The notes beneath the pieces are model-generated. The model worked only from the letters and a program-made list of their open reading frames with translations, was not told the origin of the DNA and made no database searches. A stretch of 32,000 bases of DNA from Zygophlyctis sp. KS116 (Eukaryota; Fungi; Chytridiomycota). Made by a program: the position numbers and the translations under genes. The first letter of the stretch is position 1. The number at the start of each line of letters is the position of its first letter. Shown here in pieces: positions 1 to 9,424 of the stretch. The stretch covers positions 1 to 32,000 of the forward strand of contig BAAFSQ010000077.1 in NCBI GenBank assembly GCA_054661495.1. Reading direction: 5' to 3'.

Positions 1-3000
1 TTCAGTTTTAGCTTCAGATTCAGTTTTAGCTTCAGATTCAGCTTCAGTTCAAGGGCCAGGCTCGGATCGGTCCTGGGCAGAGTGAGTTTTTTAAATTAAA
101 TTCCAGTTGTGTATCCCCGCAAAAAGTTGCAAGTAGGTTCCTGTCACCACACCTTAAAGTTGATGCTGATGATTTGGAAAAGAAACAGGCAAAGGCACAG
201 GAATTAAGACAGTCGGCATTGGATATTAAAACAGAACAATGGAAGTCAAAGGCAGGAAAGGTATTTTTTATAAATTCTAAAAAAAAGATTGAGGCTGTAC
301 GTAAAATTCAGGCTGAAAATTTAAAAATGTTAAAGGATTCTTTAGTGGAGAAGCAAAAAAATGCTCAAGTGGTATTTATAATGACCTGAAATATTAGCAA
401 CGTTCACTCTATTTAAATTCTAGGAAATGGGAAGGTTCTTCTATTCCTGGGTATTTTCAAATACTTATAAATAGGTCGCCAGTAAAAGCTATTGAGACTG
501 CTGAGGAAGAAAAGGATGAAGATGATGACTCTAATCGTAGAATGCATACGACTTCTATGCAGGTCGCTGCCATGGAGCGTCGTAAATTACAGGAAGAGCA
601 AAAAAGTTTGAAACGGGCGCAGGATGATCAAAAGCGTCGTAATATGGAGGCTAAAAAGGCTGAAGAAAGGCAAAAAAAAGATGCTGATAAACTTGCCCAA
701 AAACAAGAAAAAGTATAATGAAAAATTTAAAGAGTAGTTGCGTCGAATAGAAGAAATTAAGATTTCAAAGCAAGCCGAAGAAGATTCATTTGTAAGAATT
801 CAAATGTTTAATGAGTAGAGAAAAGAACTGGAAGAAAGGCTAGAGAAGGGCTCAAAGAGAAAAGAAGAACAAATGCGACAGGTGCGCCAAAAGGCTGCTG
901 CTGCCAATGAACAAGCTAGAGTAAGATCATCGCTAATTCAAGCATGCCGCTCTAATCCAGACAGTCAAGTTTGTTTAGTTTGCAATGTTGAGGTATTTTC
1001 GTAAATTTTGATCGTAGTTTCATCAAGATGATTTGCTTGCGCATAATGGTCATGAAATTTATCAAAGTGGTCGTAGTCCATCACCGCAGCATGTTTTGGC
1101 ATACGAAGGAAGTAAGAGTTGTTTAGTTCTCATTATATAGTGATTCCAAATGACAGATCCAAACTTTTAAAGAAGAGAATACGGAAGATCAGACAGGTTT
1201 GAATAATTCTAAATTTACATGCTTAGAAACTTCGAGAGAATGGAGCAGATTATATTTATATGCAAGAGCCACAAGATGGATCTAAACTTGCGATATTGCC
1301 GATATCACAAAATCTGATTCCTATATTTCAACAAGTACATTTAACTCGCACATTCAAGCATGACTCTAGTTCAACTGACTCAAGTCTGCGCGATTTATGT
1401 ACATTAATAGAGACAGATGTATTTTTGCTTCATTTCTAATTAAAAGGATCTTGCAAACTCTCTATACTTTTTTTCTTCGGGTCTAGTTAATGCTTTGGTT
1501 TTGGCATGCTCTTCTGTTGATGCAATGGGTAGACCCACACTGCCTCTAGAGTACATTATTAAAGTCTAATTTTAAGTGTACTTAATATGTGTACAAAGGC
1601 TCTTCAATATGCAACCCGTCAACACATTGCAAATGCTGAATTTCTTTTGTGTAATGAGAATATTTTGCTGTTGGAAATCATCGAAACACTCTCAAGAGTA
1701 ATGCATTATTGTACTCCTACTTCTGATATTTGCTTGATTGTAGCTTCAAGGCTTATGTCTATTATTACATCATGTCTTCTTTTGGAGGCTACAGAGCTTA
1801 TATCTACTCAAGAAACTATCATTAGGTGATATTTTTATGCTGAATTCATAGTTATTTATTAAATATTGACCTTGTCCAGAAAATTAGAAATTTTTATATC
1901 ATAGTTCACGGCCCAGTCACTTCAGATTCACCAATTCTGTCGTTTTTAAAAGATAGTAGCAGTCTTCTGCAAGCAATGACCAAATGTAGAAGGTGAATGA
2001 TGTTTTTCTAAACCGCAGTAGCTTACCAGTCTATTCTAGTCAAAAGATCTCAAACGGAAGCAACCATGATTTATTCTTAAAAGCATTTTTTGAAACCGAT
2101 TTAGTATGTATTATTACTATGCTTGACGCTCTACTTCTATTTAAAGGTGGACCAACTATATCTGCTGTTGAGCAAACATTACCGGAAGATTTAATTTATA
2201 TATCATATATGGGAATCAAGACACTTAATCAATTCTTTAATTATGACTTAATAATGGTAAATGCAAAGAAATTACTTATGCAAACCTTGGGGAAGCATGT
2301 GACAAAAAAAAAGGTGTATTATGCAAAAATGGTAACAACTGTGAGAATAAAAAATGTTGTATTAAGGACGGGAAAATTGTTACTAAATCTCAAAAAAGTG
2401 ACTGCTGACATGCGCTGCTGGGACAGACTTTAAAACTTTAAAAAAATGAAATTATCTCTCTTCACTCTGATTGCTTTTCTTTCGATTCCTATGGCAACTA
2501 CTGCAAAACTTAAAGTTGATGAAAAATGTTCCGCTCCAAATGCTTGTGCCAGTGGTCTTTATTGTGGTATCTACTCAATCAATCTTAAATGCAGAAGGCA
2601 TGCGCTTACAACTTTTCCATTTGGTAGTCTTCTGGATATATTATTGGAAGTCGCATGTATCATCATCCATCAATTTGGATAATCTTTTTCATGAAGTACT
2701 ACTTCTCCTTGGCTATACTTCCCTTTCAGACACACGTGGTCAAGAGATGCTCAGATTCGGACAAGGTACAGCCATCATCACCGTCTTGGCAGATTTAGAT
2801 TTTCATTATTATCTGGATCCAAGGTATATTTATTTACTATTGATATTAACTTTAAGACTGAAGGAGATCCTTTTCCCCACATTAATCAGTGCTATTTTCC
2901 AAGATGAATTAAATATCTCAATTTTAGAAGAAGACTTATCATTAGAGTTCTTGAAAGAGTTTATAGAAAATAGGCCTTTAGAATTGAAACTGGACCCGCG

Positions 3001-3061
3001 ATTCGCTCTCGAAAATCGCATACCAAGTCATTTTTTGGCTGAGATCCTAACCAGGCATTGA
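1..3061 (+). CDS. SCAPER: SCAPER-like protein (S-phase cyclin A-associated protein in the ER); 5' end outside the window, many mini-introns, interrupted by a 316-bp insertion at 2254-2569
   Basis: Spliced translation gives SWAD..LEKKQAKAQELR, a long K/E/R coiled coil and a CLVC..H zinc-finger-like segment (about 970-1050). C-terminal motifs ETDLVCIITML, QSILNAEG, LFHEVLLLLGY, YYLDPRLKEILFPTLI and ALENRIP match the SCAPER C-terminus as I recall it. Example introns: 82-106, 261-287, 372-397, 451-474, 2824-2856. Confidence 0.82.
2..49 (+). repeat. Short coding tandem repeat (18-nt unit TCAGTTTTAGCTTCAGAT, encoding SVLASD)
   Basis: Two full copies plus a degenerate third at the window start, in the SCAPER frame. 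Confidence 0.7.
2254..2569 (+). other. 316-bp TA-bounded insertion in a SCAPER exon carrying a circularly permuted small secreted Cys-rich gene
   Basis: TA occurs at 2252-2253 and 2568-2569. Removal gives ..NYDLISTQSILNAEG.. in frame. Internally, the Cys-rich C-terminal half (2254-2408) precedes the signal-peptide N-terminal half (2446-2569). Confidence 0.8.
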
Positions 3062-3141
3062 AGTTGGAGGATATTAAAGATAAAATAATGTTTCATACTA
3101 AAACTTTTAATGTAAACTATTAATGAATTTATTGAGTTTCA

Positions 3142-3689
3142 CTAGATCAAATAGCAAAGATTGAAGAATATCATTAATCCTATCAAACTTGTTTCATATG
3201 CTAACTCAGCAGATGAGGTTGCTTGAGGTTTTGCAGTAACAGCAGATGTAAGATTACTTGGGATCTTTGCAGTTGCAACCAACAGCTTTGTTTCTTGATC
3301 AAACAGACGGAATTCACTGAAATCTCTAAAGGAGACTTGTGCTCCTGCGACACTTCTAAACTTGAATGTTTGCTCTCCATTTGATGCTGATGGATTAATA
3401 TTATCATCGGACAATGTCACACCATCTGCATTATCTCCCATGCCTCCATACCACTTACTGGTGCGAGCATTAAAGAATGTGAAATTAGTAACCTTAAACT
3501 ATGCATTAGATCTTTATAACTTACAGTACAACCATCAACAATCTGAATATTTCCAGACACTTGAATAGGAGAAGCCGTTAATACCTTTGTGATTGGAATA
3601 GTGATTGGTCCTTTAACATCTGATGGATCACATTTGGAGTAAGAACTGACCAATCCTAAGAAGGCAATAATAATCGCTGCAGAGATCAT
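3142..3689 (-). CDS. Secreted, probably GPI-anchored protein with a divergent DM13-like domain (paralog A, copy 1)
   Basis: Signal peptide MISAAIIIAFLGLVSS and a 26-nt intron at 3499-3524. VSGNIQIVDGCTFKVTNF..WYGG resembles the DM13 N-terminal strands. It ends in an S/T/A linker and a hydrophobic C-terminal tail. Confidence 0.7.
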
Positions 3690-3819
3690 TTTATTTTTTT
3701 CAAAAGTCTTTGAATAGATTTTGTATTTTTAGCTGACCTTGTTTCCAATCCCTAAAAATAGCCAAATTATACTCTTATATAAATAAATACAAAATTGTAC
3801 AATAAGTTTATTGTCTGTT

Positions 3820-4493
3820 TTATAATGCCAAAAGCATCATCAATAGTCCGACAAGATCGGATGGATTAGCCGTAAATGCACTAGAATCAATACCGGTGGG
3901 ACGTGATGTCGGATAGTTTCCATTTCCAACACCAGTTGATTTTGGCCCAGAAGATCCTGTTCCTGTTCCTGTTCCAGTAGATCCTGTAGTTCCTGTTCCA
4001 GTAGATCCTGTAGTTCCAGTTCCAGATGATCCTGTTCCTGTACTACTTCCTAGTCCAGATAAAACGCTTGCTGGAACTGCAGCAGTGGCGATAAGTGTCT
4101 TTGTAGAATCATCAAAAAGACGGAACTGGTTAAAGTCTCTGAATGATACTTCTGATCCAACAACATTTCTAAATGTAAATGTCTGACCTCCAGAAGGATT
4201 AACTACATCATCAGCTACAGTAATCCCAGCTGGACCAGATCCCATCCCTCCATACCATTTAGCAGTTCCAGAATTTGTAAGCGAGAATCCAACAACTTTA
4301 AACTATGCATTAGATATTTATAACTTACAGTACAACCATCAATAATTTCAATACTTCCAGACAATTGAATGGGAGATGTTATTAAAACCTTGGTGATTGG
4401 AATAGTGATGGGTCCCTTGACATCTGATGGACTACATTTGGAGTAAGCTGAAACTGCACTTAAGACTGAAGCTAACACTGCGATTGAGATCAT
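3820..4493 (-). CDS. Secreted, probably GPI-anchored DM13-like protein with a Gly/Ser/Thr stalk (paralog B, copy 1)
   Basis: ATG at 4493 (MISIAVLASVLSAVSA) and a 26-nt intron at 4303-4328 in the same position as paralog A. Contains GTGTTGST repeats and a hydrophobic tail LVGLLMMLLAL. Confidence 0.72.
3950..4050 (-). repeat. Low-complexity coding repeat (GTGTTGST-type, about 24-nt unit); copy at about 7896-7996
   Basis: Repeated GATCCTGTAGTTCC(T/A)GTTCCAG on the + strand. Confidence 0.85.
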
Positions 4494-4648
4494 TTCTTTT
4501 TTCGAGAGATCTATAAATAGATCATGGCTTAAATCCTGTGATTCTATTATTAGCCAGTCTATTATTAGAAACATCGCATGACCAAATTACATCATAAATA
4601 TTTCTATAGATATCGAGATAGTTAACGATAGCGCTTAATAAATTAAAA

Positions 4649-5436
4649 ATGTACCAAGAGTTGAAGGGAATTTCATTTGAATATGCTCCAGAATTGCCAA
4701 AACTATCGCAGTTGAGTTTTATACAAGTTGCTGCAGAATCGCTACATTCTTTTGCTTTGGAGGAAACAGTAATCAGAGAATATCATGAGCGACTTCAAAC
4801 CATGTCTGCGCTCAAGGACGCCCGTGAATTTAGGAATAAGCAACGGATAGAACATTGGAAACTGCAAGAAATAAGAAAAGCCCCAGGATATTCTGCTAAA
4901 ACTCTTGAGCCGACTCCATCTACAGGCTTAAAGCCAGTCGCTAGCACATCAAAAACGTTTGATCTTGGAGAATTTGAAGCCAATTACTCTGCCGATCCTT
5001 GGGAATTGAATTCAATGGAAAATGAATTAAATGTGCTGCAGGACGTACTATCATCATCGTCCAATCTTACATCAAATGCATCTTCGCCGATCAAACCAAT
5101 TAATGCCATAAACTCTACTAATACAGTTAATATTAGAAAGTTTACTCAAATGGGATTTCTGTCTCAAGATGTGGAAGTTATCATTGACAAGTTTGCAAGT
5201 AAATCGGACTCTGAGGTATTTTTTAAATTTCTAAATTATAGATTATTGAATATCTGGTCAATTTTCAGAATTTAAAGAAACAAGGATTTGTTCAAAAAAC
5301 TATTATTGATGCACTTGAATTATATACTGAATATGAAATAAGAAATAAGTATTGTGGAATGGTTTTATCATTGTCCGATATGGGTTTCGATTATCCATGC
5401 AAACTCTCTATACTTTTTTTCTTCGGGTCTAGTTAA
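4649..5436 (+). pseudogene. C-terminally truncated, chimeric UBAP1-like copy created by the duplication junction
   Basis: Identical to 8595-9343. After MGFDYP it runs out of frame into SCAPER sequence (CKLSILFFFGSS*, TAA 5434-5436). Confidence 0.8.
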
Positions 5437-7007
5437 TGCTTTGGTTTTGGCATGCGCTTCTGTTGATGCAATGGGTAGACCCACACTGCCTCTAGAGTAC
5501 ATTATTAAAGTCTAATTTTAAGTGTACTTAATATGTGTACAAAGGCTCTTCAATATGCAACCCGTCAACACATTGCAAATGCTGAATTTCTTTTGTGTAA
5601 TGAGAATATTTTGCTGTTGGAAATCATCGAAACACTCTCAAGAGTAATGCATTATTGTACTCCTACTTCTGATATTTGCTTGATTGTAGCTTCAAGGCTT
5701 ATGTCTATTATTACATCATGTCTTCTTTTGGAGGCTACAGAGCTTATATCTACTCAAGAAACTATCATTAGGTGATATTTTTATGCTGAATTCATAGTTA
5801 TTTATTAAATATTGACCTTGTCCAGAAAATTAGAAATTTTTATATCATAGTTCACGGCCCAGTCACTTCAGATTCACCAATTCTGTCGTTTTTAAAAGAT
5901 AGTAGCAGTCTTCTGCAAGCAATGACCAAATGTAGAAGGTGAATGATGTTTTTCTAAACCGCAGTAGCTTACCAGTCTATTCTAGTCAAAAGATCTCAAA
6001 CGGAAGCAACCATGATTTATTCTTAAAAGCATTTTTTGAAACCGATTTAGTATGTATTATTACTATGCTTGACGCTCTACTTCTATTTAAAGGTGGACCA
6101 ACTATATCTGCTGTTGAGCAAACATTACCGGAAGATTTAATTTATATATCATATATGGGAATCAAGACACTTAATCAATTCTTTAATTATGACTTAATAA
6201 TGGTAAATGCAAAGAAATTACTTATGCAAACCTTGGGGAAGCATGTGACAAAAAAAAAGGTGTATTATGCAAAAATGGTAACAACTGTGAGAATAAAAAA
6301 TGTTGTATTAAGGACGGGAAAATTGTTACTAAATCTCAAAAAAGTGACTGCTGACATGCGCTGCTGGGACAGACTTTAAAACTTTAAAAAAATGAAATTA
6401 TCTCTCTTCACTCTGATTGCTTTTCTTTCGATTCCTATGGCAACTACTGCAAAACTTAAAGTTGATGAAAAATGTTCCGCTCCAAATGCTTGTGCCAGTG
6501 GTCTTTATTGTGGTATCTACTCAATCAATCTTAAATGCAGAAGGCATGCGCTTACAACTTTTCCATTTGGTAGTCTTCTGGATATATTATTGGAAGTCGC
6601 ATGTATCATCATCCATCAATTTGGATAATCTTTTTCATGAAGTACTACTTCTCCTTGGCTATACTTCCCTTTCAGACACACGTGGTCAAGAGATGCTCAG
6701 ATTCGGACAAGGTACAGCCATCATCACCGTCTTGGCAGATTTAGATTTTCATTATTATCTGGATCCAAGGTATATTTATTTACTATTGATATTAACTTTA
6801 AGACTGAAGGAGATCCTTTTCCCCACATTAATCAGTGCTATTTTCCAAGATGAATTAAATATCTCAATTTTAGAAGAAGACTTATCATTAGAGTTCTTGA
6901 AAGAGTTTATAGAAAATAGGCCTTTAGAATTGAAACTGGACCCGCGATTCGCTCTCGAAAATCGCATACCAAGTCATTTTTTGGCTGAGATCCTAACCAG
7001 GCATTGA
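5398..7007 (+). pseudogene. 5'-truncated duplicate of the SCAPER C-terminal half
   Basis: Copy of 1452-3061 without the upstream exons; out of frame with the upstream UBAP1-like CDS. Confidence 0.8.
6200..6515 (+). other. Second copy of the 316-bp permuted insertion (inside duplication copy 2)
   Basis: Same sequence at +3946. Confidence 0.8.
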
Positions 7008-7087
7008 AGTTGGAGGATATTAAAGATAAAATAATGTTTCATACTAAAACTTTTAATGTAAACTATTAATGAATTTATTGAGTTTCA

Positions 7088-7635
7088 CTAGATCAAATAG
7101 CAAAGATTGAAGAATATCATTAATCCTATCAAACTTGTTTCATATGCTAACTCAGCAGATGAGGTTGCTTGAGGTTTTGCAGTAACAGCAGATGTAAGAT
7201 TACTTGGGATCTTTGCAGTTGCAACCAACAGCTTTGTTTCTTGATCAAACAGACGGAATTCACTGAAATCTCTAAAGGAGACTTGTGCTCCTGCGACACT
7301 TCTAAACTTGAATGTTTGCTCTCCATTTGATGCTGATGGATTAATATTATCATCGGACAATGTCACACCATCTGCATTATCTCCCATGCCTCCATACCAC
7401 TTACTGGTGCGAGCATTAAAGAATGTGAAATTAGTAACCTTAAACTATGCATTAGATCTTTATAACTTACAGTACAACCATCAACAATCTGAATATTTCC
7501 AGACACTTGAATAGGAGAAGCCGTTAATACCTTTGTGATTGGAATAGTGATTGGTCCTTTAACATCTGATGGATCACATTTGGAGTAAGAACTGACCAAT
7601 CCTAAGAAGGCAATAATAATCGCTGCAGAGATCAT
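7088..7635 (-). CDS. DM13-like GPI-type surface protein, paralog A copy 2
   Basis: Duplicate of 3142-3689; intron 7445-7470. Confidence 0.7.
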
Positions 7636-7765
7636 TTTATTTTTTTCAAAAGTCTTTGAATAGATTTTGTATTTTTAGCTGACCTTGTTTCCAATCCCTA
7701 AAAATAGCCAAATTATACTCTTATATAAATAAATACAAAATTGTACAATAAGTTTATTGTCTGTT

Positions 7766-8439
7766 TTATAATGCCAAAAGCATCATCAATAGTCCGACAA
7801 GATCGGATGGATTAGCCGTAAATGCACTAGAATCAATACCGGTGGGACGTGATGTCGGATAGTTTCCATTTCCAACACCAGTTGATTTTGGCCCAGAAGA
7901 TCCTGTTCCTGTTCCTGTTCCAGTAGATCCTGTAGTTCCTGTTCCAGTAGATCCTGTAGTTCCAGTTCCAGATGATCCTGTTCCTGTACTACTTCCTAGT
8001 CCAGATAAAACGCTTGCTGGAACTGCAGCAGTGGCGATAAGTGTCTTTGTAGAATCATCAAAAAGACGGAACTGGTTAAAGTCTCTGAATGATACTTCTG
8101 ATCCAACAACATTTCTAAATGTAAATGTCTGACCTCCAGAAGGATTAACTACATCATCAGCTACAGTAATCCCAGCTGGACCAGATCCCATCCCTCCATA
8201 CCATTTAGCAGTTCCAGAATTTGTAAGCGAGAATCCAACAACTTTAAACTATGCATTAGATATTTATAACTTACAGTACAACCATCAATAATTTCAATAC
8301 TTCCAGACAATTGAATGGGAGATGTTATTAAAACCTTGGTGATTGGAATAGTGATGGGTCCCTTGACATCTGATGGACTACATTTGGAGTAAGCTGAAAC
8401 TGCACTTAAGACTGAAGCTAACACTGCGATTGAGATCAT
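7766..8439 (-). CDS. DM13-like GPI-type surface protein, paralog B copy 2
   Basis: Duplicate of 3820-4493; intron 8249-8274. Confidence 0.72.
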
Positions 8440-8594
8440 TTCTTTTTTCGAGAGATCTATAAATAGATCATGGCTTAAATCCTGTGATTCTATTATTAGC
8501 CAGTCTATTATTAGAAACATCGCATGACCAAATTACATCATAAATATTTCTATAGATATCGAGATAGTTAACGATAGCGCTTAATAAATTAAAA

Positions 8595-9424
8595 ATGTAC
8601 CAAGAGTTGAAGGGAATTTCATTTGAATATGCTCCAGAATTGCCAAAACTATCGCAGTTGAGTTTTATACAAGTTGCTGCAGAATCGCTACATTCTTTTG
8701 CTTTGGAGGAAACAGTAATCAGAGAATATCATGAGCGACTTCAAACCATGTCTGCGCTCAAGGACGCCCGTGAATTTAGGAATAAGCAACGGATAGAACA
8801 TTGGAAACTGCAAGAAATAAGAAAAGCCCCAGGATATTCTGCTAAAACTCTTGAGCCGACTCCATCTACAGGCTTAAAGCCAGTCGCTAGCACATCAAAA
8901 ACGTTTGATCTTGGAGAATTTGAAGCCAATTACTCTGCCGATCCTTGGGAATTGAATTCAATGGAAAATGAATTAAATGTGCTGCAGGACGTACTATCAT
9001 CATCGTCCAATCTTACATCAAATGCATCTTCGCCGATCAAACCAATTAATGCCATAAACTCTACTAATACAGTTAATATTAGAAAGTTTACTCAAATGGG
9101 ATTTCTGTCTCAAGATGTGGAAGTTATCATTGACAAGTTTGCAAGTAAATCGGACTCTGAGGTATTTTTTAAATTTCTAAATTATAGATTATTGAATATC
9201 TGGTCAATTTTCAGAATTTAAAGAAACAAGGATTTGTTCAAAAAACTATTATTGATGCACTTGAATTATATACTGAATATGAAATAAGAAATAAGTATTG
9301 TGGAATGGTTTTATCATTGTCCGATATGGGTTTCGATTATCCAGATATTAAAAAGGTTTTGATTGAAAGTGAATTGGATTTGAATTTGGCTACAGAGACC
9401 TTAATATCAAAGTATTCTAAATAA
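8595..9424 (+). CDS. UBAP1-like ubiquitin-associated protein (ESCRT-I subunit; C-terminal overlapping UBA repeats), intact copy
   Basis: N-terminal LKGISF, a central FDLGEFE..DPW...ELNVLQDVL motif and three UBA-like MGF/QGF/MGF units. Intron 9162-9187; stop TAA 9422-9424. Confidence 0.65.

Follow-up and report, generated by a model that had tools for sequence, protein, structure and literature searches.

The window analysed here comprises 32,000 nucleotides (nt) of Zygophlyctis sp. KS116 (contig BAAFSQ010000077.1, positions 1 to 32,000, forward strand) and is the start of contig C77 in an assembly of 12.7 Mb and 1,175 contigs. Close to its left end, an exon of a SCAPER-like gene is interrupted by a foreign stretch of 316 bp (2254-2569), and the structure, distribution and origin of this insert are the subject of this report. 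The SCAPER-like frame (..NQFFNYDLI) stops at 2253 and a second frame (STQSILNAEG..) begins at 2570, with the dinucleotide TA at 2252-2253 and again at 2568-2569. A first-pass annotation of the window had given the two frame ends, the TA pair and the insert length, and all of these were confirmed in coordinates and sequence. Likewise, joining 2446-2569 to 2254-2408 reproduces the in-frame open reading frame (ORF) of 92 amino acids with 10 Cys residues that it had predicted for a ring made from the insert, and a repeat check of the insert ends found no terminal inverted repeats, as it had stated. The features of the locus are as follows.

1452-9343, no strand: two tandem units of 3,946 bp, with a blunt junction between 5397 and 5398 and one mismatch (1510/5456).
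2020-2253, plus strand: host SCAPER-like exon left of the insertion, ending ..NQFFNYDLI; 85% identical over 75 residues to residues 1-75 of the orthologue P0002, and contiguous with the right part in P0002, P0152, P0153 and P0154.
2252-2253, no strand: left TA; a lone TA in the empty allele, flanking the insert on both sides in the filled allele. The joint of the empty allele has a 2-nt ambiguity, and the empty site reads GACTTAATA directly followed by TCTACTCAA in L015-L019.
2254-2408, plus strand: segment B, the C-terminal-ward half of the captured gene fragment; 88% identical to G000:C414:6755-6916. The C414 gene extends past ..GACTGCTG; the TGA at 2406-2408 is made by ring closure.
2408-2409, no strand: ring-closure junction between the truncated coding end and the fragment's own 5' leader; microhomology TG against C414 (TGNTG if imperfect).
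2409-2445, plus strand: 5' leader of the captured gene, 37 nt; 91% identical to the 43 nt upstream of the C414 gene ATG, a likeness that ends at the closure point.
2446-2569, plus strand: segment A, with start codon, signal-peptide region and first Cys module; 79% identical to G000:C414:6930-7093, its protein matching residues 1-48 of the C414 protein.
2568-2569, no strand: right TA, read from the sequence.
2570-3061, plus strand: host SCAPER-like exon(s) right of the insertion, to the stop codon; 205 homologues by phmmer, the long ones with SCAPER_N and zf-met; 92% identical to P0002 residues 76-159.
6200-6515, plus strand: second insert copy, in unit 2 of the tandem duplication; 100% identical to 2254-2569.

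In a whole-genome search, the only copies of the insert were the two within the tandem duplication, which amount to one insertion event; a genome-wide scan for other such elements was not run. Two 8-mers that start the two blocks of the insert, TAAATGCA (2258-2265) and CATGCGCT (2409-2416), recur at 2586-2593 and 2599-2606, that is, 16 and 29 nt downstream of the target (P ~6e-5 by post-hoc simulation). No order of template switches was found that uses both 8-mers and yields the observed arrangement, and they are recorded here as unexplained. In addition, the 12-mer of the empty site, ATATCTACTCAA, has a second copy at 1800-1811, 450 bp upstream in the same gene, and five matches genome-wide. 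As the upstream copy is not conserved in the relatives L015 and L016, it is probably a coincidence.

The identity of the host gene, named SCAPER in the first-pass annotation, rests on its C-terminal region. An exhaustive phmmer search with the exon right of the insertion returned 205 homologues, among which P0026 and P0030 carry SCAPER_N together with zf-met (a C2H2 zinc finger). Pfam gave no match for the host-gene pieces or for the insert; this includes the window's own N-terminal host part, and the contig begins inside the gene. For the gene without the insert, only natural contigs and proteins were used, and its exons were searched as separate pieces. The orthologue P0002 comes from a sister species with ~77-79% identical DNA; its residues up to 75 match the left flank and those from 76 onward the right flank. 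Indeed, the sister-species DNA (L015) reads GACTTAATA directly followed by TCTACTCAA, the same as the window with the insert removed, and P0153, P0154 and more distant homologues are likewise uninterrupted at the site. The empty exon is therefore ancestral and the insert derived. The statement that excision repairs the host gene thus holds on paper, as removal of the 316 bp yields exactly the natural uninterrupted exon of same-species contigs and of the sister species. Furthermore, the advised comparison of SCAPER orthologues across the site gave an uninterrupted exon in P0002, P0153 and P0154, with neither the insert nor an ordinary intron in this position. The insertion would shorten the SCAPER-like protein by ~165 residues and would be without function of its own.

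The whole-genome search found one other relative of the insert, on contig C414. This is an ordinary linear gene of 122 residues, or 134 from an upstream in-frame ATG, located by sequence comparison at G000:C414:6685-7093 (L003, minus strand, 1428-1832). Its blocks run in the order leader-A-B, whereas those of the insert run B-leader-A; when permuted, the insert is colinear with the C414 gene over a stretch that begins 38 nt before the start codon and ends at ..GACTGCTG. The junction between 2408 and 2409 fuses the outer ends of the source segment inside the insert, with TG common to both sides. Three features are therefore direct observations: the flipped block order, the closure junction inside the insert and the truncated state of the captured gene. 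Searching the assembly for an unpermuted donor, as had been advised, thus recovered a linear relative in leader-A-B order, but at 79-88% identity this gene is not the donor itself. Its identity to the insert is a mosaic, near-complete in the leader, the signal region and the C-terminal part and only about half in the first mature module, and the donor must therefore have been a different paralogue or allele. Such a pattern is typical of fast-evolving secreted proteins.

A single further relative is known, P0001 from another metagenome, which was 69% identical and was found in a search among 5.8 billion proteins. Both the C414 protein and P0001 extend ~30 residues past the end of the ring ORF. 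As the TGA of the ring ORF is made by the junction between 2408 and 2409 and the relatives run longer, the ring represents a gene fragment and not a complete gene. The proposal that circularisation builds a complete gene is therefore not upheld; the ring would be a truncated 5' fragment that owes its stop codon to an accident of ring closure. For annotation this is a caution, as a seemingly "complete" secreted mini-gene on a ring can arise by chance in this way. At the point of ring opening, the ends of the insert are adjacent and in frame in source order, but C414 and P0001 have 6 nt (two codons) more there. Both relatives accordingly read Cx6C and the ring Cx4C, and the suggestion that joining the ends restores the Cys spacing is therefore not supported.

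The Cys-rich secreted family is an orphan. It has no Pfam domain, no relatives of the captured gene were found among viral contigs, and the Atlas look-alikes of the protein are weak leads only, all below 0.9 and the best of them Dickkopf_N-like (0.87). A conserved in-frame upstream ATG of the Cys-rich gene opens the peptide MRCWDRLR(N/K)FKK (C414, L010). Measured against single-copy DNA, the word depth of this gene differs by run, at ~0.6x, 1.7x and 2.8x.

At least part of the window is held by 20 public runs from 17 studies, nearly all of them freshwater metagenomes, and 5 runs hold at least half of its words. Logan contigs of three DNA runs (X1, X2 and X3) and of one RNA run were compared with positions 1-5397. 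In the metagenome X1, contigs cross both host/insert junctions and the closure junction, and an insert-specific contig is as deep (293) as the flank (310); hence all X1 copies are filled. A contig across the closure junction (X1 record 5, covering 2378-2463) came only from a run that has the insert; in X3, which lacks the insert, the contigs at the closure point diverge into the C414 flanks. In record 19 of X3 (L017; 10,031 bp), 2251 is followed directly by 2568, and 3.5 kb align without a mismatch. The record hence represents the empty site in a strain that otherwise equals the window. This contig also passes 1452 unbroken, and the strain is probably free of the tandem duplication, to judge by this assembly path.

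The run X2, labelled "organism A", holds both states. One of its contigs ends exactly at 2253, where two paths leave: record 15 spans the left filled junction, the only filled junction listed for this run, and the empty path is a 2,864-bp contig running on to 5397. The depths (filled path 116, flank 281, single-copy upstream region 150) are consistent with roughly one unit of each state per genome or with mixed strains. In both X1 and X2, the 1452-9343 region is ~1.6-2.4x as deep as the upstream flank, and contig breaks fall at 1452-1511.

An exact-protein look-up found further same-species empty alleles in L019 (99.8-100% identical to the window), L016 (96-97% identical, single-copy), L018, the P0152 cluster, a 935-bp contig of an NCBI assembly and a record of the Joint Genome Institute (JGI). 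The window's own assembly holds no empty site and no intact copy of the C-terminal part of the host gene. An ORF spanning the filled right junction was not on record in exact look-up, and a left-flank 30-mer had no match in JGI metagenome contigs, a collection from which entries near this genome may be absent. Thus, of the two kinds of molecule that the first-pass annotation had proposed to look for, the empty site is present in several contigs, and the circle junction is present in none of the contigs. The insertion is derived, real and polymorphic.

Positions 1452-5397 are repeated at 5398-9343 with one mismatch in 3,946 bases, a duplication that the first-pass annotation had missed, and the insert is present twice because it lies inside this unit. 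Four haplotypes were observed: single/empty, duplicated/empty, duplicated/mixed and duplicated/filled twice. The contig L018 (~99% identical) crosses the duplication junction between 5397 and 5398 colinearly and continues across an empty site. With a 55-nt overlap between its ends, it closes into a cycle of 3,630 bp, the length of one duplication unit without the insert. Occurrence of the same blunt junction in a relative diverged by ~1% argues for ongoing homogenisation or turnover of the units. Taken together, the L018 cycle and the apparent lack of a duplication in X3/L017 suggest frequent homogenisation, pop-out of a unit or a free circle of the unit. One insertion followed by ordinary exchange between near-identical tandem units explains the haplotype series, and precise excision is not needed for it.

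Within the duplicated unit, two neighbouring minus-strand genes share 255 nt (3389-3643 and 4193-4447) at 77% identity. They form a paralogous pair and encode small secreted or surface proteins. After 3954, in the Gly/Ser/Thr-rich part of one gene of this pair, the contigs of X1 and X2 have 6 additional nt (TCCTGT), and this site therefore represents a length polymorphism.

We consider it probable that the insert goes back to a single, recent and heritable insertion of a very small circular DNA into the exon. A fragment of ~316 bp from a small secreted Cys-rich gene, reaching from -38 nt to about codon 92, would have been closed into a ring by end joining at the TG microhomology. The source gene would be an unsampled paralogue or allele of the C414 gene. 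The ring material could be either excised or copied chromosomal DNA of the size of a microDNA, or a circularised partial cDNA; the two are indistinguishable because the captured region has no intron. The ring would then have been opened at, or copied from, another point, the TA within ..GGTAATGG.., and inserted, through a 2-bp overlap, where the SCAPER-like exon was broken at the TA of ..TTAATATCT.., leaving TA on both sides and the order B-A. A lineage carrying, or later acquiring, the 3.9-kb tandem duplication would have hosted the insertion. The allele states could then have arisen by homologous exchange between units, that is, by gene conversion, unequal crossing-over or pop-out of one unit. 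We infer the physical circle, its origin as DNA or cDNA, and the order of duplication, insertion and conversion.

Circular intermediates are recognised by a flip from A-B/C-D to B-A/D-C with microhomology-only breakpoints (PMC7450558), and the insert, a copy of a linear gene with its blocks flipped, bears this published signature. A circular molecule joined through a 2-bp TA overlap, as the first-pass annotation had proposed, is thus the best explanation, and we have adopted its cautious option, a one-off capture of extrachromosomal circular DNA (eccDNA) or circular cDNA. MicroDNAs measure ~200-400 bp and derive preferentially from exons and 5' untranslated regions (PMC8040306); with 316 bp taken from the 5' end of a gene plus exon, the insert agrees with them in both size and origin. 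Furthermore, the insert equals one ring length to within 6 nt. This unit length favours a circle because a single opening yields one ring length automatically, while models of template jumping need a coincidence.

Several observations weigh against a circle. The first base of the fragment lies 2 nt ahead of the conserved upstream ATG, a position that could be the transcription start. Reverse-transcriptase (RVT_1) matches number at least 150 in the genome; they lie mostly on short contigs, and many fall within open frames of 1,000-1,700 residues. An RNA-templated origin without a free DNA circle is therefore possible; this large, apparently active retroelement load probably also fragments the assembly. 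The 6 extra nt in both relatives mean that the insert may be slightly shorter than a full ring, which would weaken the argument from unit length, unless the donor itself differed at this position. No identical linear donor or donor scar was found in the genome (DNA, protein and flank searches), the reads or the protein databases; the one linear relative in the genome is the 79-88% identical C414 gene with its strongly diverged middle part. Finally, the ring junction (2569 to 2254) is absent from the X1, X2 and X3 contigs, the assembly and the JGI metagenome contigs, which is weak evidence, as contigs lose rare forms. The read evidence likewise consists of Logan contigs and not of raw reads, so that rare forms are invisible and depths are rough.

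Four further classes of element were examined and rejected. A DNA transposon or miniature inverted-repeat transposable element with TA target duplication is ruled out by the missing terminal inverted repeats and by the lack of copies beyond the tandem duplication. A viroid-like or structured RNA, or a known RNA family, is ruled out by a folding z-score of +0.96 and no Rfam match. The borders (TA/AT..GG/TA), the lack of an exact-frame solution and the absence of the insert from orthologues exclude a canonical or U12 spliceosomal intron. A back-spliced circular RNA is excluded as well, since the paralogue has no GT after the 3' closure point.

The same arrangement could in principle be copied from RNA with no free circle involved, although we regard this as unlikely. 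A reverse transcriptase primed at broken host DNA would have copied the Cys-rich mRNA as far as its 5' end, then switched to an internal position on another molecule of this mRNA and continued there, and its product would have been joined to the other host end to give B-A. The internal junction indeed joins an internal coding site to the leader start, which lies 2 nt before the conserved upstream ATG and is plausibly where the transcript begins; the at least 150 RVT_1 matches, with many open frames >1000 aa, would supply the enzyme, and all junctions show only 2 bp of microhomology. However, priming and termination would have to hit the same TA of the mRNA or lie no more than 6 nt from it, for which the chance in AT-rich sequence is a few per cent; with a circle, no such coincidence is needed. 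The insert has neither a poly(A) tail nor a longer target-site duplication, and the intronless captured region cannot separate cDNA from DNA here either. Replicative template switching, of the kind described as microhomology-mediated break-induced replication (MMBIR) or fork stalling and template switching (FoSTeS), or capture from a head-to-tail duplicated donor, is in our judgement a similarly doubtful route. In this case, B would have been copied, followed by a switch back to the leader, copying of A and a return to the host. The 2-nt microhomology at all three junctions suits such switching, as do the blunt tandem duplication at the same locus, itself a rearrangement product, and the recurrence of both 8-mers shortly downstream of the target. 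Nevertheless, three switches and the coincidence of unit length would be needed, the 8-mers could not be fitted into any order of switches, and neither a tandem donor nor the junction between 2408 and 2409 outside the insert was found.

The remaining alternatives concern the reality, reversibility and consequence of the insert. An amplification, ligation or assembly chimera absent from the organism, which the first-pass annotation had allowed for, is scarcely credible. The assembly is fragmented (1,175 contigs), a tandem duplication with two identical filled copies could partly be the assembler's choice, and X1, the best holder, may be the window's own assembly sample. However, filled junctions occur in two separate studies, X1 (a metagenome) and X2 (a named organism), a clean insertion would require two chimeric junctions at the same base, and the insert-specific contig of X1 matches its flank in depth. 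We also regard it as very improbable that the insert is reversible, with precise excision at the TA borders taking place in some cells or nuclei of strains like X2, in the manner of an internal eliminated sequence (IES), so that the SCAPER-like gene is restored and a ring encoding a secreted peptide is set free. The TA at both borders, the scar-free removal, the X2 paths that branch exactly at 2253 (left filled-junction contig 116, flank 281) and the existence of duplicated-empty (L018) as well as duplicated-filled haplotypes would all be expected of such an element. Yet the empty state is the ancestral allele, present in the sister species and several strains; the X2 mix fits one filled and one empty duplication unit or mixed strains; X1 holds only the filled form; and the ring junction occurs in none of the three DNA runs, the assembly or the metagenome collection. 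Moreover, there is one insertion event in the genome and the ring ORF is a truncated accident. Paramecium IES ends carry a TAYAG consensus, which the insert ends do not fit. A search for PF13843 (piggyBac-type transposase) gave no match, but neither did its control, and it is hence uninformative. The excisable gene-on-a-circle of the first-pass annotation is therefore not supported; were it real, the reversible insert and the 3.6-3.9-kb unit, seen as a closed cycle in L018, would mean that circle-mediated excision and reintegration are still going on at this fungal locus. Tolerance of the insert through its removal from the mRNA as a long or non-canonical intron, either GT-AG (2257-2515, leaving 19 extra residues) or GT-TG (2257-2566, leaving 2), is improbable as well, though a shade less so. 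At 2257, G followed by GTAAAT makes a good 5' splice site, with either option the frame is kept and stays open, and the window assembly has no intact copy of the C-terminal part of the gene. Against this, the candidates are ~10x longer than introns here, there is no canonical intron in exact frame, and no RNA contig covers the insert; such splicing would in any case bear on the consequence of the insertion and not on its origin. The intron scale is given by an RNA contig (X15 record 9) that lacks exactly the 26 nt of 1826-1851 with GT..AG borders, which is direct support for an ultra-short intron. The same record leaves an intron-like stretch at ~1994-2019 unspliced.

Small eccDNAs (microDNAs) abound in many eukaryotes. 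Lasting marks that they may leave in the germ line are largely unexplored, and documented circle-mediated insertions range from tens of kb to Mb. The locus described here offers a natural example on the scale of microDNA, a unit-length, block-flipped copy of 316 bp in a conserved exon, with empty, mixed and doubly filled states in wild freshwater populations. It also allows circle formation, reintegration and the homogenisation of tandem units to be tested directly by PCR in an existing isolate.

Among known systems, yeast double-strand breaks capture Ty1 cDNA or mitochondrial DNA by end joining, and templated insertions are known. The insert resembles such captures in being a short foreign fragment at a break with minimal microhomology and no transposon features. 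However, captured linear fragments are colinear with their source, whereas the insert is circularly permuted and one unit long. It shares with Paramecium IESs the TA at both borders and a removal that is scar-free on paper, but these number in the thousands and have an end consensus. In contrast, the insert represents a single event without this consensus, its empty state is the ancestral allele, there is no sign of programmed excision, and its host is a fungus without nuclear dimorphism.

The likeness to microDNAs and other small eccDNAs (Shibata 2012, as summarised in PMC8040306) is closer and extends to the 200-400 bp size, the origin from a gene 5' end plus exon and the closure at short microhomology. 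MicroDNAs are free somatic circles, while the insert would be a chromosomal, inherited product of reintegration, and no circle was observed in the X1-X3 contigs. Duplications and translocations through circular intermediates have been described for colour sidedness at cattle KIT (Durkin 2012), tilapia vasa (Fujimura 2011), industrial yeast strains and human segmental duplications (PMC7450558). The insert shares with these cases a flipped block order, source ends fused inside the copy, ~2 bp of microhomology at each breakpoint and heritability. They measure 20 kb to Mb, whereas the insert is 316 bp long, exonic and gene-truncating. It differs further in that its exact donor is available only as a 79-88% identical paralogue, in its chytrid-like fungal host and in the segregation of both alleles in wild populations. 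Overall, the insert probably reflects a known mechanism at an unusually small scale and is a new, population-documented case of a known class of rearrangement.

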